64,000 bases of DNA from Setoptus koraiensis (lineage: Eukaryota > Animalia > Arthropoda), in the NCBI GenBank assembly GCA_048013815.1, contig CM106586.1, positions 5,208,001-5,272,000 on the forward strand, in the 5' to 3' direction. A program made the translations under genes and the position numbers. Shown here in pieces: positions 34,046 through 53,436 of this stretch. The notes under the pieces were generated by a model, which was given only the letters and a program-made list of their open reading frames with translations, made no database searches and was not told the origin of the DNA. Position 1 is the first letter of the stretch. Each line of letters starts with the position of its first letter.

Positions 34046-36128
34046 ATGTCACTAAAAGAGATACAACTACTAACGGGCCACACTGAAAGAGTCTGGGCTC
34101 TCGCCTGGAATCCCGACGGTACTAATCTAGCATCATGCGGAGGAGACAAGACAGTACGATTGTGGGCCAAAGAAGGTGAGGGATTAATAATCATAACTAG
34201 AACAATACTTATGCCTATATTATCGATAACAGTGGCTTTAATATTTCTTATTTTTAAAACATCTCTATCTAGGAAACAAGTGGAGATGTCAGGCAGTCCT
34301 GACGGATGGCCATATGAGGACGATCAGAAGCATTTGTTGGTCGCCTTGCGGGAACTATTTGGCATCGGCTAGTTTTGACTCGACTATATGTATTTGGCAA
34401 AAATCAGATGATGGTAGTTGGAATAGTGTTGGCAACCTCGAGGGCCATCAGAGCGAAGTCAAAAGTGTCAGCTGGTCGGCTGATGGTAAATTCCTAGCCA
34501 GTTGTAGCCGCGATAAAACAGTTTGGATATGGGAGAAGGTGGAAGATGATAACTTTGAGTGTGCAGACTTAAAAGACGATCACACCCAGGATGTAAAGAG
34601 AGTTGTTTGGCACCCCAAAGCAAATGTCCTTGCGTCTTGTAGTTATGATAACACAATCAAATTTTTTACTGAACAAGGTGAAGATTGGAAATGCTCACAA
34701 ACGTTGAATGCTCACACTTCCACTGTATGGTCTATTGATTTTAATCTGACCGGTGAAATGTTAGTTTCATGTAGTGATGACAAGACTGTCAAGATTTGGA
34801 AGAATCAATCTGTCGATTCTCAACAGTGGAAATGCATAGCGACTCTTCAAGGATACCATAGTAGACCTATCTATGATGTATCTTGGTGTAAACTAACAGA
34901 TCTCATCGCTACCTCCTCGGGCGACGACTCCATCTGTGTTTTCAAATCAAGCCTTCAATCCACTGAAACTAACGGCCCAGTATTTAATTTTTCTACTAAA
35001 GTACACAAGGCTCATAATGGTGAAGTAAATAGCTTGAAATGGAATCACAAGCAAAGTGGTTTGTTGGCCTCTTCGAGTGACGATTTTACTATAAAACTGT
35101 GGCAGTTCGAAAGTGAGGATACAATGAAGGATAATCAAACAGGTATCATAACTCAATTCATCCTAGACAATATGAAAGTGGAAGCTCAACAGATAAAAAA
35201 GAGCGAAGTCTCGTTAGAAATAGGTTTAAACTTAACCGATTTCTCTGATTTGCTACAATCCTTACAGGCAATACAACACTTGCAGAGCGAAATTGAACGC
35301 CACAGTTTACCATCTGGAAAGGAAATTCGTATACCCTCCGCTGATACTGCCCGTCATTTAGACATATTAGATCTAGAGTTTGATAATGATGACATATGTA
35401 CCAAGTTTTCTTTGGACGTAAGAAATTATTGTGATGCTCTGATTTGTAAATTCAATTTCGTTTGTTACTTACCTCTACCCAGGAGATCCACCAAGCTTAT
35501 GTTGGTAGCGAACCAGCTTTTGGTTGCCGATAAGCCTGGCGATTTGTTCTTGATTCATCGTGAGAGGAAAGATTTTCTACTCGGACATCTCACAATGTTC
35601 ACAGCAATCCAATTCTTGCTGGACGGAAACAATATAAAATACATAATTTCTGCAGATAGAGACGAAAAGATCAGGATATCTTTATTTCCCGAATCTTTTA
35701 ACATAGAAAGATTTTGTTTTGGCCACAAAAAGATGGTTACGCATATTCTAGCATTGGACTCCAAAATGTTCATCTCGCTGGATGAAGACAACGAACTTCT
35801 TCTGTGGGACACAGACGATCTAACTAAACATGCTAGCAAAGGATTAGTACCAAAAATGCGATTTGGTCTGGATAAACTTCTAATGCTCAGAAGGGTAGAT
35901 GGAAAACGGTTGGAATCAAACGATGGAGATCATCATGATAAGAGACATAAAGCCAGCAGTACAATCGAAAGAATTTTCTTACTTGCCCAAAATCTGAGTC
36001 ACGGGTGGCAACACCCAGAGTTCTTGATAGGCATCAAAGTATCTATGGAAACAAGTTTGCAGTTACTCAGAATAACGGAAGAAACTGTCAACTATTCGGA
36101 TAGAGTGGAACTCCAACAACAAAGTTAG
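34046..36128 (+). CDS. CIAO1-WDR4: CIAO1 (cytosolic Fe-S assembly WD40) fused in frame to WDR4/Trm82-like WD40, about 661 aa
   Basis: Exon 1 34046-34175, a 97-bp GT-AG intron, and exon 2 34273-36128 join in frame (WAKEG-NKWRCQ). CIAO1 motifs [42 protein letters not shown] and [12 protein letters not shown] end near 35112. The same ORF continues without a stop into the WDR4 motifs [29 protein letters not shown] and IERFCFGH. Confidence 0.88.
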
Positions 36129-36173: not shown

Positions 36174-39100
36174 CTACGTTTTTAGCTTATTCCAGTCTTC
36201 CACTTTAACAATTTCAGCCATTATGGTCTTGATTTCTGATTTAACCTTGTTATTTAATTTATCACTAACATCTTCTGTGATATCAATCATCGTAAGGAGT
36301 CTGCCATCGATACCGGACTTCACAGGCTCAATTTGTTTGAGCACGTCAAGTTGTTGAGGTCCCATCTGTCTCCCAATAAACTTATTGATCTGACTGATCA
36401 ATATTGTGTCATCCTGTGGACAATCCAATCTTGCGCCATACACGACTGAGTGAAGAAACATCGACAACCTCTTGCGTAAAGACTCTACTTTATCTCTAGA
36501 CTCCGCACCAGTATAGAGTCTTCTAAAGATACTTAGCGATTGTAGAAATTGGTCGTAGTCAAAGTCATACTCTTGTGTCCATCCGAAAGGGACGTACTTG
36601 GTCCTTTCTTGGCAAGCGGAATGAAATAGAATCAATTGTCCAACTAAAGAGTCTTTAACACGTTGTGGATCCGCATTAATTGATTGAGCTAGAGCGTTAA
36701 ATCTTGTGAGAATGTCTTGTGCGCTCCCATCATAATAAAACTTTCGTGCCATTTCCAGTAGTCTGACATCCATACCCTCCGCCGTTTCGGCAACCAATAT
36801 AATAAGTTTCGTGTTGTTAGTTGACACATTTCCTATTCTGGTTATGGTGTCAGATAGACATTTTGTCCAATTCATAATCATGTGTACATTAATCAAGCAT
36901 AGACAGCTTAAATTTGCAGATTTATTGATATCGACTAAATAGTTAATTTTTTCAATCGCAGTTGATGAGGCAAATATCTTGTAGTATTGCTGATCGCTCA
37001 TTTTTTTCATGGTTTCTTCGATCTCGAACATGGGTGTTGCTCGTGATCCATGAATTACCACAAGAACTTTATACGGTGATTCCAAAGGGTCGCTATCAGA
37101 GCCCAGTAATAACCTGATCACATCTGGTAAATTCGGACACGACATAGAAAGGGTATCGACTAAATTAACATCCCCCGCAGAGCTTTCATCTCTCAGATAA
37201 TACTTGAGGATATTCATAAAGGCTATTCTATCTGATGATTTCAATGAGGAGCCGACATAACTGTATAAAAAAGGAATAAAATTTTCTGCTATTGTTCCCG
37301 AAGAATCATTCTTCGACTCTTTGTATCTAAGGAGAAATTCTTTTAACAGCTTGAGACATTCTGTTGAAGAAAAGCTATACAGTGGATCTAGTTTCCTTAG
37401 ATTATGGATAACTTCAAACACTTTTCCTATCTTCGTTCCATCTAACTTGTATTTTTCGCGCTCATGCATAAGTTTTTCCGATGTTAATTTGGATTCAAGA
37501 ACAGTTCTCTCTATAGCGTCCGATGATTCTTTCAGAGTTTTCAGACCATCGAGTAAATCCATATTGAATAAATCATCAGCCCTCTCCGAGGGAATCATTT
37601 CTTTGGATCCTGATGAAGCTTCACCTTCTTTGTGAACTAATATATCATCAGATTTTATCAGCATATCCAAGAATTTCTCGTCATATTTCACAAGATCTTT
37701 TTGACAAGCCTCAAGTTTTTTTTCCAGATCTAGTTTTTTAATCGCCAACTCAGGATTGAGCTCTTTAACCAAAATGTCCAAGATCTCTTCTTCATCTTGT
37801 GACGCATCTTCATTTGCGGAAGATCGAATGATTTTGAATAAATGGACGATGTCATCCGATATTGTACTTGATCTGTTATCCTGTATGAAAATAAGTTGCA
37901 AAGATTTTTTAATAAATACTTTCTGGTTATCTATGATGAACCAATCTCTCAGAGAAGTCGAGTCACCGGCTATCTCACCAAGTTCAGTAGACCATTGAGT
38001 ATGCAATTCATTCCGAAGCATGGGTACAACATTAAGAGCTTGGTTTGCTGCAAAACGCTGATCATCGGAATTGAAGAGAAAATCCTTTATCACAACTATG
38101 TCGCAAAATCGTGCGTTCATTGCTACTTCGTTGAACCACCCAGATCGGCAAGCACTGACAGTGACGCATTTTGAGCTAGATCTAGAATTCAATTCTTTGT
38201 TTAGCCAGAGGTTCATGGCATTGGGTCCATCAAATAAAAGTTTCAAAAGATTCGAGGCGGATGATCTAATGATATGAGTCGATAGTTTCTCGTGGAAATC
38301 GATGTCGAAAAACTCTCTGAAATGCTCCTTCATATCATCAATACCTAATTTATCGATCTCCATTGTTTTTCCGAATTTCTCAATTAATTCTGTAAGATTT
38401 CTTTCTGAAAAATCTTCACAATAGTTACTCAAAGCAGAAAGTAATAGGCATGTCATCTCAAACAAATCGTCTTGCTGGTACACTTCGAGCTTATTCACTT
38501 GGTCGCTCCACCTAGATGATTGTTCATTCAATTTGGTCGATATCTCTTGCGCTGTGTTGAGGATGCGGCGCAATAAGCTTAGATCAAGTTTTAATTGGGT
38601 TGTTTCATGCATTACAGCATCCAGTTGGCTATTAAGGGAATCTACGTTAGATTTGATAGTATCAATCTGATTAGTCAGAATTGATTCTTGTTGATGAGAT
38701 TCTCTCAATCCGATCTCGAGTTTGTCCAACTCATCCTTCATGGGTTTTAATTCGATAATTACCTTACCATAATCTAAAGTGGAAAGCACCCATTGTAGTA
38801 GAGGTAAGACAGCCTGAGAGGCTCTTTTAGCCTGTGATTCTTGAAAGCTCTCACGGCGATCTTGTATAAGTTGCTCCACCTGTTTTATTATTGCTGAATT
38901 CAGATTTCTTTCACAATCAAATGATGTCAATTCATCTTTCAAAGATTTCCTTGCCAAAAATTGTTTCATCGAAGTCCACGACGTGTCGTTAATACCCATC
39001 AATCTAAGTGTGGCCTCTAGTATATCTCTTATGGTGTTGGGAGGAGCGCGTAAGGCCCTGATTTCCGAAAGAGCATCTGTTCTCAAATACTGTTTTATGT

Positions 39101-42100
39101 TTGATTTAGCCTGTTCTACTTTCGGCCTTATGATATCGAGTTGCATACTTAACTCTTTTGCTTGCTGTGATGTCTCATTATTTCTCTCCTCGTGCTCTCG
39201 TTTTGCTATTTTTAATTGGTCATGCTCTGTTTCCGCTTTCTTAACAGACCGGGTAATAGCTTCAACCAACAAATTTGCCTCATTCTCTTTCAACGATATA
39301 CTTCTTTCTTTTTCATTTGCACTTTCCTCTATCATAGATACACTTTTTTGAAACTGACGTAATTTTTCTGCGCCTATGAATAAATTTTTCGAGCGCTCCA
39401 TTAATCGCTTTTGATTAGTCAAATAATTGTGAGAAAAATCGCGCGAAAAGGATAAAAATCTTCTCAGGTCATAACGATACAACAATGGAAAGGTGTATTC
39501 GAGCCAATTTGTGTCGATGAATCTCTTCAATATGTCCCCTATTTTGTACGAGAGGACTCTTTTGTTTGCACATTCTTTACGGCAATTACCTAGCCTTGTT
39601 GAAGTGGTCTTATCAATTGTGTGATCTATGATCAGATCTAGATCGTTTTTCGTCAGTACGGTATCCATGTTTACAACACGTCCCACTGTTGACCACAATC
39701 TTAAATCGTTATAGCCTAATGTTTTGGATAAAAAGATCACCTTTATGTCCATGTATCTGAAAGGATTTGATTGAACCAAGCTGATCATCGTATATATATG
39801 TTCGAATAGCTCAACATCCAGACTCATTTGTATATGACTCAAAACTATCAATATTTTCTTAGACGACGGGTGGCCCCCAGGAGCTGGCGTGTTAACTTTT
39901 GACAATCGATGAATATCCCGGATTATATCTCCAATTTTCCGCTTTAATTCTGTGATACTAAGATAATCTCGAGCAGTCCAAACTTCAGAATAACCCAATT
40001 TGATAGCAATCGATCTAACAGCCATAGACCTTCCAGTACCGTAGCACTTCGAAGTGAGGGTGAGCACCTTGCAGCAGCCATTTCTGTTCGTTGAAAAAGA
40101 ATCCATATCAGTGAGAAAGCATTGGATTATCGAGTATATTCTCAGAAGTTGATCTGTCCAAACAATGTCATCAATTTTTACGACTGACTCATCGTGTTTT
40201 AGCCAGAGTTCTGTTGCTTCCTTGCAAAACTCTATGAATTTCTCACGAGACACATGCTCCATATTAGATGACTCTTCTTCCATGCTACACCACAGAAAAG
40301 TTTGGCAGGGTGTTTGAAAGTCTTTGCCGATGATATTAGCCATTATTCCCATAATATAAAGCTCATTGATCTCTGATATATTACTTGATCTTCTTATATC
40401 GGACAGAAAATTTTCTGCAAACTTTGAATGGTCCGGAAGAGCGCTGCTGATCTCTTTCATCGATCTTTCAATTGCGTTGAACACTTTTGAATAGTTGATT
40501 TCACCAAGCCTGTCTATCATTCCCATCAAATATTTAGTAATTTCTGTCGCACTCAACTCTGGATTCTTAATGTGGACCAGATTGAATTTACACAACAACC
40601 GTGGACTCAAATTAAGGGATTCAGTTGTACATATTATTTGCAGTCTTGGGATTGATATCCATGACAGATTTTCATTTACTTCATGTGAGTCATCAGATGT
40701 CGAAGTTGAATTTATCACTTTATGGTAACCTCCGTATGTCATCATAAATAACAATAGTTCAAGGAACGATCGGCTCATCCATTTATCGTCATAGTCTATG
40801 AGATCAATGTTGTTTGCAAAAATAATAAGTTTGCGTTCAACTTTGTTCATACCAACATCGTTCAAAATACTTGATAGCAAATTCACAAGTGAATTTGAAC
40901 TTGTTCCCCTCGAACAGTCAATTTTGATCAAGTAGGAGTCTATGTGGTTGAGATCATACAAGATCTGCTCTATGATTATCTCTTTATAAATTTGAACTGA
41001 TTTGCCTGTGAGAAGTATGTGCTCGTCTTGTTCGGTGAGAATCTTGCATAAACTAATTTGCTTGGTCAAGTGATCGGGAGGGTTTATCAGGCAAAATTGA
41101 TTTTGGTCAACCGTCGAATATCTCGCCTCTTGGTTGTATCCTTTGTGTTCGATCAAGTGGTGCATTGTGGCTTGTCTACGGGCTATCATTTTCATAGCGT
41201 TGGTAATAGAGAGTGGATCAGTTAATTTGTTTGTTAATCCATTACCAATAAAGTTATCCTTGAATATATTTTCAATCTGTTTTAAAGATTGGCCAATGTT
41301 CACGGTATTTATCCCCTCTATTCCTTCATCCCTGCTAAGAGCCAGCCTGGTGGTATCAAATTCATGATAGATTATTCCTAAGCGAGATATCGACGCAGGT
41401 GACACATATTTCAAGTCGATTGTTTCAAAAATCAATCTTACGTTAGGCTGAAAACGAAATCCCTGCATTCGAGCTTTGCATTCGAACGACTCATGATTAT
41501 TAGGACTCAGATCTATTCTTTCTCCTGACGCCAACGTAAGAACCTGATTATCATCAAGAATAGAGTTTAAGGACTCTATCCACTCAGGATCAATAGGACC
41601 ATCTAACACCAACCAAACTGAATTTCCTTTAAACGTCTTCTCATTGCATGAAGACGAATCATTCATGCAATTTACTGCATTTCTGACAGTATATGAGAAC
41701 AAGCCTTCAACCCATAGTTGTGTAGTCGGATCAATGTAACCAAACAATTCTTTCGGACTCAAACTCTTAGGATTTATGGTCTTAACTTGAACAAATTCGC
41801 GCAAACCGGCAGGAGACAGTGTTGATTCTTGATCATCATAGAAGCCAGAGATGGCCATGTTCAATGCCATTTGCAATATCTGCCATGTTGTGCTTTTACC
41901 GCTGCTTGTTGGTCCAACGACTAGTAAACCCATGTGAGCCTTCATTTGCTGATAAAGTTGCTCAACTTTTTCAGTTTGTTCGAAATTATCAACCAAATTC
42001 AGTTTCGAACATGCCCGTTTGATCAATTTTCTTCTATCTGATTCGAATGAAGAGTCTCCACATCCAGCATTAAAATTGTTATGCTTAATTTCTGCAAGTT

Positions 42101-45100
42101 CTCCAAATACATCAAGTAATGAGCGATTGAATTCTGAGATATCAGAGCCAACTAATTTAGGTTTAATAGTCTGCTTTATCACCTTCAAAAGCTGTAGTTC
42201 TATTTGATTAAGATTCTCAGATTTAGTATCAATAGAATCACTAACCTTGAGCTGACGTATTATGACCATTAGCGTGCGCTGACTCCAATCATAGTGTATC
42301 TGATGACTGATCATGTTTTGCACCTTCTCGAACCATAAAAGTAGTTTCGCTGAGATTTTCTCAGCGCTCACAACATCCAATCCTTTGCTCATAAGTGTCT
42401 TCGAGACGATCGGCCCTGGAGAGGTTTGCATCATAGATATCGGCATAAATAGTGACTTGAGGTTGCTTGGAAGTCGATTGCGACCCAAATATCGTTCACC
42501 GATAGGATTTAGAGTAATGAAAAAAGCCGAATTAAGATCAATACGACTTCTCTTGTACCTGTCCATCATAGAAGCACTTTCTTCGCCGGACATTGCTGGA
42601 TTCTTATATCTGCTACGTTCTAATTCGTTAGCCTCAACTTCATGTGACTTGGAAATCAAGAAATCAACTCGAAGGTACGGATTGTTGTCCTTTATGCACT
42701 GCTGAATCTCTTCAAGGGTTGAAGATAAGGATGACATAACATCTTTGCTCAGTCGATTGAATTCGTCCAAGCAACACCAGAATCCACTCTTGACCATGCC
42801 AATGATGATACGACTTAAAGAGAAGAAATCAACTGTTTCGTCACAGTTAAATACCAAAACATGGCGACCCAAGCATGCTCCCAAGGCTTTTATGGATTCA
42901 GTTTTGCCACTTCCAGCGGGTCCATAAGGATTTGTACCCATTTTGAATTGGCTGACAGCCTGAGTAGACACCAAGAAGCATCGATGAGTTGCAGCGTTTT
43001 CGATTAATTTTCGGCATTGTAATCTTGACTTGGTATTTGTCATCGATGATTGCTGCACGTTTAATGGCAACAAATCAAAGTTATATTCGAAAGAAGCGTC
43101 TAGCATTCTAACATAAACAGTGATATCGTTAGATTTCTCATCGATTTTAGAATAATAGCGCAGTTGTTTTTGCCATTCCCAATCTTCAATATCTTTCACT
43201 TGATTCTCTCTTAAAGACTTGCATATTGTTATGAAATGTACTATATCTAATGTGAGCGAATGCTTTTTGTACTCAAATAGCACAATATCACCAATTTCTG
43301 TCGAAGGTTTATTCATCTGTAGAAGCAACATTAAGCTATTGTGGTAGTCTTGTTCGAGGCGATCGAAAGTACAGTTAGCAATAGCTTGCTCCATTTTCGC
43401 GGAGAAAGTTATCCAGCTCGACAAACTTATAATTTGACACGGAAGAATAAGTAGAGGTGGCTGATGTTGCAAACTGTAAGCCTCCAAACCTACCCCAATA
43501 AGTTTCTTAAGAGTTAACGAGATTTCATTTTTGATAAGGTCTAGCAAATAACAAACTCTAAATCTGTGATCCAGCATATCTGTGGTGCCCTCTCTTTTCT
43601 CATCAATCATTATCCTGTTACGAAACTTTATGATCTCACCATGTACACTTCCGACACCAATGACGGATTTTGAACCTTCGTATTCGGGTGAATCAATAAG
43701 GAATTTATCAATAGAATTGTTGAAGATCTTTCTGATTAGTTGACTTGTTCTGCTACTATTTTGAACAAGTATAAAGTCTTCATCATCGGATAATATATAA
43801 ACAAGTTCTTCGTCACTCAAGAAATAGAATCGCGAAAAATTCTCTCTTACTCTCTCTAGAAGTATGTGCAGTTCTTTTTGAATATGATCCAAAAGTGATT
43901 CGATGGACAGCAGTTTTGGTTTGAGATTAGGCGCGTTTAGTAGTCTTGTGATGCTGAAATTAGTGGTGGCATCTTTGCTTACACGAGATTTTATCAACTG
44001 TGATCGCTTCAACGAATCACCGAAGCCGGCCAATGAATCCATGAGTTCACTGAACAACATCAGAGCTTGAGCGTATTTCGATCCACCCTCTTCTATAGTG
44101 CTGTACTTTTGCTTGGTGGCGGAAAATACTCTGAACGAATTAGTTCGTCGCGTTTTTGTTTTGGACAACTGTCTCTTGAATATAGGCAGCAAGGTGAGCA
44201 GTTTGGACTGTATTCGATTAATTAAGACCAAGTAAGCCTCTAGATCTTTACAAATAATTGACCATTTTTTCAACTCGTCGATTACGTCGTTAGACACTTC
44301 ATACGATGCGTTGTCATCATTCATTTCGGACCCTGCTGCCAATTTCAAACTCTTAAGAACAGACCGACAATGACTGATTTGTTCAAATACTTTCTTGAAG
44401 TCTTTTATGATCCTGAACTGGTAATCACTTTCCATGTCATGGCTCGTGAAGTAAATCACTGCAAGATGCGAACCGTGTACAAGTTGTTCTAATTTACTCA
44501 TCGATTCATTGATATCACTTTCCAAATTGACCTGCGAATTCAATTTGCTGATTAAATGTGAATTAGTTTTGATTTCGTTTATAGATTCCAGAAGGTTTCT
44601 CATTGTCATGGTTTTATAGTTAACTTTCTTGTTCATCTTTATTATCTCCAATAGTTGAGACCAATGTATATCATGAAAATTGTTGCCTCGACATTCCTGA
44701 AGCAATTCGATCTTAATTATCCATTGATCGATGGTTGTTCTTAATGGATCAAGCAAATCATTAACCTGAACTGACTTCAGAGAGTCTTTATTCGTCGTGA
44801 TATAACGATCTTTGTATTCATTGATGTATCGGATAACTTCAGCAATATTCTCGCGACCTTCGGATATCCAATTCATATCTAGATACTTTCGGAGACTCTC
44901 ATTCAGGTCCCGAATTAAGTCTGTCTGATAGCTCTGAGTCTTTATTTGTTTGCGCGCGAGAAAGAATTGCCAAAGTGTTGATTTAGCATCATGGTTGTTT
45001 TGTGCATCCAACCCTTTGTCGTATAGGAGGAGCATTCCAGGAGCAGGAATTCTAAAATATTCATACTCAGCTCGAACGATCATTAAACGATTATGTAATA

Positions 45101-47939
45101 GTTCGGACCGATCTGAGATATTTGCGATGTTAGTTGAGCCGGAATTTCGAAAATCTTGCATGAATTTATCAATATCTGCGAATATATCATCATGTTCTGT
45201 GCTAAGTTTTTCTTTAAATGAAAGCTTCATTCGATCCAATTTCCCTTCCATATCATCAAGCGTACCAAGGAATTGCCTGAAATCTATCTCGATCAAATTT
45301 TTAGTTTCGTCATCAATTACAAAAGATGATTCTTTAACGTTGACTAAACCCTTAAAAGCTTTCCTCCATCTATCAGTGGACTGCGTTTTCACTTCGATTG
45401 CACTTTTTGTAGATTTTACAATCTGTTTGGTCGGCAAGTCTTTATCTTGATGTTGGACGAGGTCGGAGATACTGTTGATTGTGGCACCATTGATGAAGGT
45501 ATCAAGTCTGAACAAATCCATGGTAGTTAATGGCTGTCTTAATATCTGTGTGGACATGGTCAGATAAGTTCGGAGTCGCTCATAATCACAGTGCACAGAA
45601 TATTCTAGATCATCTAAGACAAAGTGAATCAACTCTTCATACGATTTTTCAAGGAAATCTGACACATTTTGAATGTCTAAGTGGATATTCGGATTAGTTA
45701 GCAAACATTTACTAGTGTCCTGAAATTTTCTAGATTCCAACAATTTAGAATGGATGGCTAACAAGACTCTATCGTGTTTGTGATCATCACCAACAAATTC
45801 GCCTTCAAACAATCTGCTCAGTGATTCTAATTTTTGCTCCCTCGCTTTGATGTCTTCGTGGTTTGGTACATCAATTATGATTCTGGTCGCTTCGAGCTGG
45901 AGGCGAGCACTTCTCTCTAGTATGCTTGATATTTCAGCTATTTCCTCGAATACGAAGGATGTATTGCGTACCATCGTAGATGCAATCTCAGCAACGTCTA
46001 TCATTTGATCATCAGCACTATTGTCAATCCTTAATCTCATAATATCATCTACCGTGCTGAGTATTTTTGACTTGAAATGTGATCTGATCAGATCCTCGTT
46101 TGGTGTCACTGTGATGGTACAGGAATCGTCAGAAGTGAACAAAGTGAGGTTGATTCTATTCGAATCTACAGAGTCACCATCTGTAAGCGACGGGATAAGA
46201 ATAGGTCCGATATTTTCAAGTTGATTGATAATTATTGAATCTAATTGTGCGCGCCAGTTTTTCTTCCAAAGCCCACTGTGTTGTCGGATGGAGGGAATCT
46301 CGAAATTCTCTTCTATATTGGTCTTTACAAGAGCACAAATTGCTTCGAGCGCAGATTTCCATTGTGCCGAAATTCTCACAGATTCATCTATGATACGATT
46401 AACTTTAAGCACTTCGAATAGAGACTTCATCTTCTCATTAATTTCTAGCAAAAAATCGGCAAGTTGACGACAAGTTATCATTGTCTTGTCTAAACACTTG
46501 ATCCAATCGACCATATCTTTAGTTTTTCTAGCATTCTGCAACGAGGACTCACTGGGTTCTATCTGAACCTTACTACGATCATCCTCGAGAAAGCCATCAT
46601 AATCAAGCCATGTCAGGTTTTTTGATTGTGACAAACCAATAGTGGCTATCAATCTCTCGGCAGCATCCGCTAGAATTGGTTTGAGCGTGGGCTCATCCAT
46701 TTTCTCAGCCAGACTTTGACGATCATCTATGATTCTGTGCAAAGTGAAAGCCAGACCCAAATAAGGCGATATTGTTTGAACAAGGTCTTTAACATCATTG
46801 TCGATTTCGGTTGTTAGATTTAATCTCGTTAGCAAAGCGTAATCGTCTATGAACATGAATAGATTCTTATCGAAGGTAACATAAGCTGAAAGAGCGCGTG
46901 ATTGACTGTCGTTAGATAGCTTTGCGGCACACCTAATGCAGCAGTCCGATGGTTGGAAGTTTAGAGAGCCAACAAACTGCTTGATCCAACTATTCAGAAC
47001 TTTAATCTTATGCAAATGATGTTCATTTACAGTCACTTGCAGTTGATTGATTTTCTCTTCAACTATTTTGGGTGTTCTATCTGTGTCATCTGCTTTTGCG
47101 TTGTCATTTCTATCTTCAGTTGGATGTGTCGTAAAACGTCTCGTTCTGTATTCCTTGAATACCCATGAGACAGCCTGTTGAAGTGCGATCAATCTCTCTT
47201 GATTAGAGTGTATGATGTTGATTCTGATTACGTAATTGGAGTTGTGTTTGCTACTGCTCATTTTTGCACTACCCTGTGGTAGCGCCACTGTCGAAATGGC
47301 ATCATCATCATCATTGTGCCCTTCTGTTTCACAGAGAATATCGTATAGTTGATCAGCCCAATCAACAACATTATTCAAAAAGTTTGATCTCTCTGTATCG
47401 TTGAGCAAATTCACCAGATCTATTCCGTGTTTTAGTTCATAATCTTGAATACAATCTATTAATCGCAGTATGTACAAGACATTGGTCGTTTTGGGCTCAT
47501 TTTCTGTCAAAACAGTTGATCGAGGAGCAGTGGCCGCTGGGATGAGGCAGTCTTTGAGCCGACCGATGAGCTTGTGTCCGTCGTTTCTGTCTTTGAGAAT
47601 CTCATTCCGTCGACTCTGTTGGAGGTCAGATTGGCCAGAGCTGTTGATAAGAACTAGAGTCAACAATTCACTACCATTATAGCCTGCCGATTGAGCGTTT
47701 ATTTGTTGCTGCGGCTGGGGAGCCAGCTTGAGCACTAGTACGGAGTCTTCATCGATGCCATCAAGCTGATCTTGTTCAACCAGCTCTAGAAAGCGCTCAA
47801 GATTGTTTCGTTGTTTTTCCGACAAACTAGCCGCCAAATTGAACCGTCCACCTGATTGTTGTTTGTCCAGTTTTTGTTGTATAACGTCAACGATGCCTCG
47901 CGTAGCCGAGTGCGGGGTGGCCATCACCTCTTCTTGCAT
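36174..47939 (-). CDS. DYNC2H1: Cytoplasmic dynein-2 heavy chain, divergent and intronless, about 3921 aa from the first ATG
   Basis: One uninterrupted ORF; the first ATG is at 47939 (the ORF track starts at TTG 47969). Linker [10 protein letters not shown]; AAA1 [34 protein letters not shown], which is of dynein-2 type; AAA2 GPTSSGKST; stalk [40 protein letters not shown]; AAA6 [17 protein letters not shown]. Confidence 0.95.
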   Translation of the reverse strand: [3921 protein letters not shown]

Positions 47940-48535
47940 GATGCTATCTGATGTCGACGGGCGAGCCAACAGCTAACGAGCTATATAAGTAGCTTCAAGT
48001 GGCCCCGATGAAAAGCTGCTGGTTGAATGCGGTGCGATAACGTCAATGTTGGCAATATTATCTGGTCTTAGACGATTTGCAATAGTTGATGTGATCATAT
48101 TGTTGCGCTGTACAGACAACAATGACAACAAACAATTCGTCATTGGTTGCGAGGCAAACACGAGCTCTCTGCATAGCAACGTGAACAAGAGCCGGTCGAC
48201 ACGAACCATGTAACGTGTTACGTGATCCGTAATGGCCGCCATTGTGGGAGTGTGCTTGAGAATAAAGTGGCACCAGCACCGCAGCACGGCTGCAAACACA
48301 CGCACACACACACGTTGCGTTGCAATAGGAAGCGCGCGCGCGCCCTGCCATGCTACACACAGCAGGCGCTCCAATGGTTCAGTAGTTCGGCGGCGGCGGC
48401 CGCCGCTCGTTCTCTTGGGCCAATTCAACATTCGTTACTTGCTTGTCTGCCGCTGCCGATCGAATTTTTCGGTGGTTCGCAAATCTCACATTCACGACGC
48501 ATATACTATTGTTATTACAGTGACTATACGTGCAC

Positions 48536-51512: not shown

Positions 51513-52610
51513 ATGGCAACATCACCGACAACATTACCCTTGTCCCCCACCAGCGTAGGAGAATATAACATTTCTTCCCATATTGGTAGGGGAAGCTTCG
51601 CAAATGTCTACAAGGGCTTCAAGAAACGCGGACACTATGAGGTAGTTGCTATTAAATGTATTCAGATCTCCTCATTATCACGTACATCGAGAAACAACCT
51701 TTTCAACGAAATAGAAATACTAAAGAAAATTAAACACGATCACATAGTCAAAATGAATAAATTCACCTGGGATTCCAGAAATATTTACCTCATATTCGAG
51801 TACTGCCCAGGAGGGAACTTGGCCGAATTTATTGAAACTAGGAAAACGGTTAAACCGCCTATTTTGAAGCACTTTGTTCAACAATTAGCACTCGGTCTGG
51901 AACATCTCCATTCTCAAAATATCGTGCATTGTGACCTCAAACCGGAGAACATTCTTCTCTCTACACCACCTGTAGGATCACTTAGGAGCGTCAAGTTGAA
52001 GATAGCGGATTTTGGTTTCTCTCAAATAATTAAAAAAGAACATGGATTTACCCACGGATTGAAAGGTTCGCCCTTGTACATGGCTCCTGAGATTTTACGC
52101 CAGCAACCTTACGACGCTAAAGCTGATCTATACTCACTAGGAGTAATAATATATGAGTGCCTGTTCGGCATAACTCCATTCAGGACTGACGACTTTCAAT
52201 TAATGATCGAGCAAATTTTGTCATTCGATCCCATCAGAATACCAAGTACTGTGGATATACCTTGTCAAACCTTATTGAAAAGACTGCTAGTGAAAGATCC
52301 ATCAGAGCGTATGTCATTCTCAGAATTTTTCCACCACGAATTTGTTGATCTCGTACATTGCCCCACAGATGATAACTATCATAAAGGAGTGGACCTAATC
52401 AATCAAGCCGTCATAGAGGATACGCATGGAAATTATCAAGACGCAGCTCACTTCTATACTGAAGGGCTACTTTATTTGGTGCCTGCCTACAATTGGCTAG
52501 ACTCATTTAATGACATACAAAGAAGATCACTTCATTTGCGCATCAAGGAGTATGTGTCTCGTGCAGAAAAAATCAAGCAGCAGTGTTATCAATTCTGTCA
52601 TACACCGTGA
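51513..52610 (+). CDS. ULK3: ULK3-like Ser/Thr kinase with a single MIT domain, intronless, 365 aa
   Basis: GRGSFANVYK, VAIK, HCDLKPENILL, DFG and GSPLYMAPE motifs. C-terminal VDLVHCP...AVIED...FYTEGLLYLVPA...IKEYVSRAEKIK resembles ULK3 MIT1. Confidence 0.9.
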   Translation: MATSPTTLPLSPTSVGEYNISSHIGRGSFANVYKGFKKRGHYEVVAIKCIQISSLSRTSRNNLFNEIEILKKIKHDHIVKMNKFTWDSRNIYLIFEYCPGGNLAEFIETRKTVKPPILKHFVQQLALGLEHLHSQNIVHCDLKPENILLSTPPVGSLRSVKLKIADFGFSQIIKKEHGFTHGLKGSPLYMAPEILRQQPYDAKADLYSLGVIIYECLFGITPFRTDDFQLMIEQILSFDPIRIPSTVDIPCQTLLKRLLVKDPSERMSFSEFFHHEFVDLVHCPTDDNYHKGVDLINQAVIEDTHGNYQDAAHFYTEGLLYLVPAYNWLDSFNDIQRRSLHLRIKEYVSRAEKIKQQCYQFCHTP

Positions 52611-53436
52611 AGTTGTACCTGATTCCATCCTCCTCTTGTTCCTCTTCGGGTACATCCGGACACTTGGTCTCTTTGTAAATGGTGGAGTCAATCTCGGGGA
52701 AGAAGGTGTCACATTCAAACTGTGCGTGTATTCTTGTTAAATAAATTCTTTTGCATTGTGGCAACTTCAGAGCTTCTTCATATATGCTTTCACCTCCAAC
52801 TATCCAGACGGTTCCTTTATTTCTAAGTTGAGAAACTCCCTCTAGAGCGGCGGGTAGCGAGGTAAATATATGGTCAACTGAATCGCGGTCTTCAATGGTC
52901 GATACCGTGTGACTGAGAACGACGTTCGTTCTGTCTTTCAATGGCCTATACTTCGGTGGTATAGATGACCAAGTCTTTCGGCCCATAATCACCACATTCT
53001 TTAGATTAGTTTCGTTAGTCTTAGTTGTCATTTGGTTGAAATATTCAAGTTCGTTCTTCAATCTCCATGGTAATTTGTTTTTGAACCCAATTCCATTGTT
53101 ATAGCAGGCAGCCGCTATAACGAAGAAATCGCTTCTCATTGTTTGTCTGTTAATATTCTCGTCTCTGGTGATTTCGTTCAAATCCATTTGGCTCAACTTA
53201 GATTTAAGTTGATCATGCATGCGTCCAAAATGTACTGTCAAACCGTCTAAATATGCTTTCAGAACGCTTAATTCTTCTAAATACACAGTATCTACATCAA
53301 TTTGAGTAACATGTTTTTCCTCATTATTTCGAGCAAAAAGATTTGGTAAATCGCTGTGTCCAGAGGCTTCCAATAAATTGTCAAGTTGTTCACTCGAGTA
53401 CTTATAGCTTGTGTATTCATTTATCAAATCGTCCAT
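52573..53436 (-). CDS. DHFR: Dihydrofolate reductase with a 99-aa N-terminal extra domain, 287 aa
   Basis: The DHFR domain starts at Met100 (53139): GIGFKNKLPW, VIMGRKTWSSIP, RPLKDRTNVVLS, WIVGGESIY, RIYLTRI and CDTFFP. The frame is open up to the ATG at 53436. Confidence 0.93.
   Translation of the reverse strand: MDDLINEYTSYKYSSEQLDNLLEASGHSDLPNLFARNNEEKHVTQIDVDTVYLEELSVLKAYLDGLTVHFGRMHDQLKSKLSQMDLNEITRDENINRQTMRSDFFVIAAACYNNGIGFKNKLPWRLKNELEYFNQMTTKTNETNLKNVVIMGRKTWSSIPPKYRPLKDRTNVVLSHTVSTIEDRDSVDHIFTSLPAALEGVSQLRNKGTVWIVGGESIYEEALKLPQCKRIYLTRIHAQFECDTFFPEIDSTIYKETKCPDVPEEEQEEDGIRYNFTVYDRIDNTAA

Follow-up and report, generated by a model that had tools for sequence, protein, structure and literature searches.

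We analyzed a window of 64,000 nucleotides from the genome assembly of the arthropod Setoptus koraiensis (GCA_048013815.1, contig CM106586.1, forward-strand positions 5,208,001 to 5,272,000), and all coordinates given here count from the first letter of that window. The gene under study lies on the plus strand at 34046-36128 and encodes, in one frame, CIAO1 followed by a part related to WDR4/Trm82. CIAO1 is the scaffold of the cytosolic iron-sulfur (Fe-S) targeting complex, and WDR4/Trm82 is the non-catalytic partner of METTL1/Trm8 for 7-methylguanosine at position 46 of tRNA (m7G46). To our knowledge, CIAO1 and WDR4 are separate in every well-studied model organism. A preliminary description of the locus had proposed an in-frame fusion of the two, and this was borne out: the open reading frame (ORF) is unbroken, its junction is transcribed, and the same architecture recurs in 30 relatives.

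Gene structure and transcription

The ORF at 34314-36128 (+) comprises 604 uninterrupted codons. The mature gene is composed of exon 1, a 97-nt intron, and exon 2, with a product of ~661 aa (Table 1). Position 34046 had been taken as the start of the gene and does stand as such, but it opens a separate exon 1, and the intron behind it had been missed. In its own frame, exon 1 translates as [44 protein letters not shown] before leaving the frame at GTGAGG, and the N-terminal residues of P0002-P0015, relatives without the intron, align to it. Its 3′ end is fixed by an RNA joint, as the first contig of sequencing run X7 skips 97 nt (34173 -> 34271, cut +2, with GT..AG ends). It is this contig without intron 1 that identifies X7 as an RNA run. 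No other splice joints were reported in the X7 contigs. The fusion gene retains an intron at its 5′ end only, and most relatives are encoded by a single ORF without an intron. The CIAO1 part ends at ORF residue 266 (...KLWQFE, nucleotide ~35111) and is followed by 338 codons without a stop, in agreement with the complete CIAO1 and ~340 open codons described beforehand.

Table 1. Features of the CIAO1-WDR4 gene (window coordinates).
Feature	Position	Strand	Description
Exon 1	34046..34175	+	43 codons + 1 nt ([17 protein letters not shown]...AKEG); CIAO1 first WD repeat
Intron 1	34176..34272	+	97 nt, GTGAGG...TAG, phase 1; splice in X7 RNA contig 1
Exon 2	34273..36128	+	In frame with exon 1
Remainder of seven-bladed CIAO1 WD40 propeller	34273..35111	+	End ...FTIKLWQFE
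Linker, ~80 aa	35112..35350	+	SEDTMKDNQ...; helix, one strand, second helix
Putative mini-WDR4, predicted ~four-blade beta module	35351..35870	+	[27 protein letters not shown] and ERFCFGH
C-terminal tail, ~85 aa, and stop	35871..36128	+	Predicted helical or disordered

We then considered whether the fusion could be an assembly or sequencing artefact in which a stop or indel at the junction had been missed, a reading whose only support is the general expectation that fusions of this kind frequently prove spurious. The Logan contigs from runs X1, X2, and X4, which belong to studies other than the assembly's likely source, contained 100% of the sampled 31-mers of the gene. Mite RNA was present only in runs X7 and X9, and a second X7 contig, 35033-35297, runs through the junction free of gaps and mismatches. 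Together with the same architecture in 31 independent assemblies, the identical sampled words and the identical RNA contig mean that the artefact reading is effectively refuted. The fusion gene is transcribed across its junction. Runs X12 and X15 were also tried as an RNA test but yielded no reads; their label is probably that of the host plant, and so they provide no test.

Homology of the CIAO1 and WDR4-like halves

The N-terminal ~330 aa form a complete CIAO1 propeller and are a CIAO1 orthologue by homology and by tree. Pfam recognizes six WD40 repeats in the 604-aa ORF (E 9e-52), with the seventh repeat in exon 1, and named CIAO1 matches from spiders, horseshoe crab, insects, molluscs, and vertebrates score ~E 1e-95 to 1e-99 at 51-57% identity. 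An AlphaFold2 (AF2) model shows ORF residues 1-264 as a propeller, with a predicted local distance difference test score (pLDDT) of ~90.

To identify the C part, meaning the 337-338 aa after the CIAO1 end, we compared it with known structures and protein families. Searching the PDB with phmmer returned yeast Trm82 (2vdu_B, E 7e-14) and three human WDR4 entries (E 3-4e-11), and the next match was seven orders of magnitude weaker than these four. The WDR4 motifs named in the preliminary description ([25 protein letters not shown]) are present and lie within the stretch that matches Trm82 (E 7e-14) and WDR4 (E 3e-11). A profile of the C parts aligned with Sarcoptes scabiei wuho at 99.1% probability (hhalign), which is the outcome expected of a WDR4 half. 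The sequence match is central only, however, with C-part residues ~120-235 corresponding to human WDR4 101-217. A profile search of 1.84 billion representative proteins gave 1082 matches at E<=1e-10, and the canonical WDR4s among the matches listed cover profile positions ~135-258 only. When aligned with canonical WDR4s, the C part leaves ~130-170 residues of their C-terminal blades without counterpart, and its own first ~80 residues are unalignable. Pfam propeller matches to the module were below threshold only. Neighbors of the C part in a protein-language-model search were arthropod WDR4 clusters (score 0.86), which we treat as a lead only.

Structure prediction told a similar story of partial retention. 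AF2 run on the 31 aligned C parts gave a predicted template modeling score (pTM) of 0.70, with pLDDT >=90 for residues ~80-250, and the model contains 15-16 strands arranged in ~four blades, with two helices and one strand on the N-terminal side and low-confidence helices on the C-terminal side. All of the top 10 Foldseek matches in the PDB were human WDR4 or yeast Trm82 chains (E 6e-9 to 2e-7). VIA-align superimposed 129 residues on human WDR4 (7u20_B, residues 73-231) at 2.2 Å and 33% identity, with a Z-score of 13.6. Both model and alignment lack the seven-bladed propeller and C-terminal helix of WDR4. Judged by sequence and predicted fold, the C half is a reduced WDR4/Trm82 module of ~four blades, corresponding approximately to human WDR4 73-231, and not a full propeller. 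The earlier equation of the C half with WDR4 therefore stands at the level of sequence and profile but does not extend to a whole WDR4, as only the central third is recognizable.

About 20 positions are invariant across the 31 C parts, including DRDEK.R and GH/FGH, the most conserved part of all WDR4s. In the motif DRDEKIR (D182-R188, in the numbering of the C-terminal 338 aa), no residue varies among 16 sequences, and in 31 only the Ile (I187) does. METTL1 contacts blades 3 and 4 of WDR4, and the disease residue R170 of human WDR4 (yeast K223) contacts METTL1/Trm8 (PMC10300002). The human R170 position falls within the DRDEKIR motif of the C part. As blades 3-4 and the R170 motif are kept, the retained module would be the METTL1- and tRNA-facing part of WDR4. 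The METTL1 partner gene is not in the 64-kb window. The C-terminal tail is ~50-60 aa longer than in most relatives, the extra length being found only in the window gene and P0001, and its AF2 pLDDT is <50.

Junction, relatives, and genomic surroundings

At the junction, the CIAO1 tail after LW.Y measures 4-10 residues in the fusions, as in free CIAO1. The linker behind it carries the conserved motif KGMKxLTIxDEIxxxL and a helix, LQxLQxEI, and is modeled by AF2 with low to medium confidence. A junction Met (window 35124-35126, aligned to the Met of 'KGMK') is present in ~20 of the 31 members. Canonical WDR4 N-termini read 'MxxLxV...', and the linker has the similar 'MKxLxI'; because of this resemblance, the junction Met may be a relic WDR4 start codon. 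If it is the old start, the fusion removed only a stop codon and a spacer. None of the 31 members has a stop codon at the junction. In the window, the junction DNA reads GAA AGT GAG GAT ACA ATG and includes a donor-like GTGAGG at 35113. Splicing from this donor finds no support in the X7 RNA contig, which is unspliced there. In three distant relatives (L001:10001-11893, L002:10001-11560, and L006:4296-6110), the junction reads GGT ATG A.. (Gly-Met) without exception, in which GTATGA is donor-like. Upstream of the fusion gene in each of them, and on the same strand, is an ORF of 95-121 aa whose end lies 4-378 nt away. We also observed that synonymous differences between the window gene and relative L003 amount to 0.14-0.18 over 35094-35333 (aa 261-340), against 0.29 overall (Fisher p 0.009, post hoc). 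This dip is weak, a similar one lies at ORF residues 121-200, and it could be noise or a nucleotide-level element.

Next, we examined how widely the architecture is distributed. Searching with the C part recovered 15 proteins of 519-646 aa that also start with CIAO1, and searching with the CIAO1 part recovered 15 more fusions (604-651 aa); these relatives come from Logan, JGI, or ENA assemblies. A FastTree phylogeny of the CIAO1 domain was built from 123 rows, of which 31 were fusions (the window and 30 relatives). All 31, with one Aceria tosichella entry, form a single clade with Shimodaira-Hasegawa-like support of 97. This clade nests among chelicerates, and within it the window gene and P0001 are sister to all other members; its only named member is Aceria tosichella. 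Since all fusions fall into one clade, the fusion probably arose once, in early eriophyoid mites, and we infer that it is ancient, at the base of the eriophyoid clade, rather than an oddity of a single genome. Among the matches listed from searches of 5.8 and 1.84 billion proteins, no CIAO1-WDR4 fusion was found outside the clade. Two candidates were rejected along the way. P0028 (263 aa), considered as a stand-alone C module, is a cut fragment of a fusion, as its ORF is open to the contig end. P0174 (Triticum aestivum, NCBI, 613 aa), a high-scoring match considered as a fusion, consists of two CIAO1 propellers in tandem; it is either a genuine gene with two propellers or a tandem duplication that was joined in a single gene model.

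Outside the clade, the halves are separate, as had been stated at the outset: unfused CIAO1 proteins of other animals are 332-347 aa long, and WDR4 is a distinct protein of 360-423 aa. The closest unfused CIAO1s, P0179 and P0213, are of normal length, P0213 being followed by a convergent unrelated gene, and Sarcoptes wuho is a normal 410 aa. Ratios of nonsynonymous to synonymous change (dN/dS; Nei-Gojobori, against the 79-91%-identical relative L003) rose from 0.05 in CIAO1 through 0.11 in the WDR4 core and 0.16 in the linker to 0.20 in the tail. The whole frame, including the linker, is kept as protein under purifying selection.

The surroundings of the gene are extremely compact and intron-poor, as published for eriophyoids (PMC7738191, PMC11879100), whose published genomes measure 32-35 Mb on two chromosomes and whose genes lack introns in 75-84% of cases (PMC7738191, PMC11879100, bioRxiv preprint). 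The stop codon of the fusion gene lies 45 nt from that of a convergent neighbor, a 3931-codon intronless ORF at 36174-47969 (-) encoding a divergent dynein heavy chain (AAA_6, DHC_N2, MT stalk, and AAA_lid_11). An X7 RNA contig at the 3′ end of the fusion gene extends past 36250 into the dynein gene, and for this reason the two convergent transcripts probably overlap. The compactness, the intronless dynein gene 45 nt away, the retention of a 5′ intron only, and the mite RNA in a run whose organism label probably denotes the host plant together point to an eriophyoid mite as the most likely source. Further along, a kinase and MIT domain gene (ULK3-like; 51513-52610, +) is convergent with a DHFR gene (52573-53436, -), their ORFs overlapping by 38 nt at the 3′ ends. 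The DHFR gene is a 287-aa ORF in which the DHFR domain begins at residue ~106, and its ~100-aa N-terminal extension, without a Pfam match, makes it a possible fusion. No ORFs of >=200 aa were found on either strand of window positions 1-26600, which is unusual for a genome this compact.

Origin and interpretation of the fusion

The explanation we favor, to which we assign a probability of about 0.6, is that the locus is a real, expressed gene for a two-module protein of ~661 aa, which arose by intergenic collapse, with a reduced WDR4 half, and has been long retained. A head-to-tail arrangement of CIAO1 and WDR4 would have come about in an ancestor of the eriophyoid mites, after which genome streamlining would have erased the spacer between them along with the stop codon of CIAO1. 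This would place the junction at the normal CIAO1 end and make the Met and 'MKxLxI' the old WDR4 start. WDR4 would have been trimmed to ~four blades before the clade radiated, with the METTL1- and tRNA-facing blades 3-4 and DRDEKIR (R170) kept. The modules may act in parallel, with CIAO1 delivering Fe-S clusters and mini-WDR4 partnering METTL1/Trm8 for m7G46. More speculatively, the CIAO1 propeller may anchor the folding or solubility of the incomplete WDR4 propeller, perhaps permitting its reduction. A compaction-driven polyprotein had been suggested earlier; compaction fits the 45-nt gap and the intron-poor genes, but the notion of a cleaved polyprotein is unsupported.

Several observations weigh against this explanation. 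RNA coverage comes from a single low-depth run, X7, with a word depth of 3-7 in four contigs with gaps; low depth and fragmentation mean that it establishes continuity at the junction only, and not a full-length transcript. Eriophyoid transcript contigs are also known to merge adjacent genes (PMC7738191). A single ~75-kDa protein product is an assumption, and the junction Met, kept in only about two thirds of members, may still serve as a start. Within the fusion clade, and deep in it, lies P0187, the UniRef entry of Aceria tosichella, a 334-aa CIAO1 that ends exactly at the junction ('...KLWKYDNEA', where its 82%-identical sister goes on '...TNEGMRSS...'). This end may be a secondary split with a real stop, a frameshifted transcript, or a cut record. 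As for ancestral adjacency, CIAO1 is not among the neighbors of Sarcoptes wuho, and with the two genes apart in Sarcoptes an extra rearrangement is needed. On the structural side, the Foldseek matches to WDR4 have TM-scores of only 0.31-0.36, and VIA Z-scores of the same order are obtained with generic WD40 proteins, though at 9-18% identity. As Z-scores do not by themselves separate WDR4 from generic WD40 proteins, the WDR4 assignment rests on sequence identity and motifs. We also know of no four-blade WD40 fragment for which folding or METTL1 binding has been established.

Some of these points would be accommodated if one ORF gave two proteins, with separate CIAO1 and mini-WDR4 also or mainly made, whether because a shorter transcript is translated from the junction Met, because the disordered linker is cleaved, or because the junction GT is used for alternative splicing. 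The Met directly past the CIAO1 end in ~20/31 members, with a WDR4-like N-terminal motif behind it, would suit this account, as would the donor-like DNA at the junction (GTGAGG at 35113 in the window; GGTATGA in L001, L002, and L006), the Aceria tosichella record, the low AF2 confidence in the linker, and the weak synonymous dip over aa 261-340 (p 0.009, post hoc). We nevertheless consider it a minority possibility: the RNA contig is unspliced at 35113 with no joint reported beyond intron 1, the Met is missing in about one third of members, the linker is under purifying selection as protein, and comparable synonymous dips occur elsewhere in the gene. Likewise, none of the 31 members carries a stop there, where one would do no harm were the halves produced separately.

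A different question is whether the joining itself matters. It is unlikely, in our estimation, that the fusion is functional as such, with CIAO1 tying the METTL1 writer to the Fe-S targeting complex or replacing lost WDR4 blades structurally. The specific proposal that the fusion was kept because cytosolic Fe-S (CIA) targeting and the METTL1 m7G46 writer cooperate, as in Rosetta-stone proteins, could mean that the CIA complex recruits the methyltransferase to Fe-S-dependent tRNA-modifying enzymes or that Fe-S status gates m7G. Retention over a deep clade, with constraint on both halves and the linker, is consistent with it, and the CIA pathway counts several tRNA-modifying enzymes among its Fe-S clients. 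Yet neither METTL1 nor WDR4 is known as an Fe-S protein, the matches listed from the 5.8 and 1.84 billion-protein searches include no comparable fusion outside the clade, and a full-length AF2 model shows no confident packing between the modules (pTM 0.48, vs 0.70 for the C part alone), which makes coupling of this kind quite improbable. We are more doubtful still that the C module is a decaying or repurposed remnant, with a canonical WDR4 elsewhere performing m7G46 or the modification lost. About three of the seven blades (N- and C-terminal) are unrecognizable, Pfam propeller matches are sub-threshold, and many conserved genes are missing from the eriophyoid genomes published so far (68.6% arachnid BUSCO, PMC11879100); a remnant, however, is hard to reconcile with a core dN/dS of 0.11, ~20 invariant positions in 31 sequences, including DRDEK.R and GH/FGH, and a core AF2 pLDDT of >=90.

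Our literature search found no paper on a CIAO1-WDR4 fusion or on eriophyoid gene fusions, the supplements of the A. lycopersici genome paper included, in keeping with the earlier statement that no such fusion was known. What is new is both the fusion and the truncation of its WDR4 half to ~four blades. In humans, the two partners have been studied intensively and are linked to disease: microcephalic primordial dwarfism results from mutations at WDR4 R170, and METTL1/WDR4 is a target for cancer drugs. A natural four-blade WDR4 under selection would show which part suffices to bind and activate METTL1, and should mini-WDR4 indeed activate METTL1, it would define a minimal WDR4. If coupling to the CIA pathway were functional, Fe-S delivery would be linked with tRNA modification. 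Intergenic collapse, the origin we prefer, would make the fusion a clean, datable example of extreme animal genome streamlining creating new multi-domain proteins. The fusion is also usable as a shared-derived eriophyoid marker in contaminated plant sequencing data.

Compared with known systems, the first half is conventional: like CIAO1/Cia1, it is a seven-bladed WD40 propeller and groups with chelicerate CIAO1, but whereas the canonical protein ends 5-7 residues past its last strand (332-347 aa), here 338 more codons follow. Canonical WDR4/Wuho/Trm82 stands alone as a protein of 360-450 aa, with seven propeller blades and a C-terminal helix. This family is the best sequence, profile, and fold match of the C part, which keeps the motifs ADKx[15 protein letters not shown](V/I)S and (F)C(F/L)GH; it differs in that the first ~70 and last ~180 residues of the canonical protein have no counterpart in it, predicted helices stand in place of N-terminal blades, and the module is fused behind CIAO1. 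The arrangement as a whole resembles fusions by intergenic collapse (Rosetta-stone proteins), in which same-strand neighbors with tiny spacers merge at a stop/start boundary. It departs from them in that the pair was previously undescribed, the fusion is old and clade-wide, and one partner is drastically reduced.
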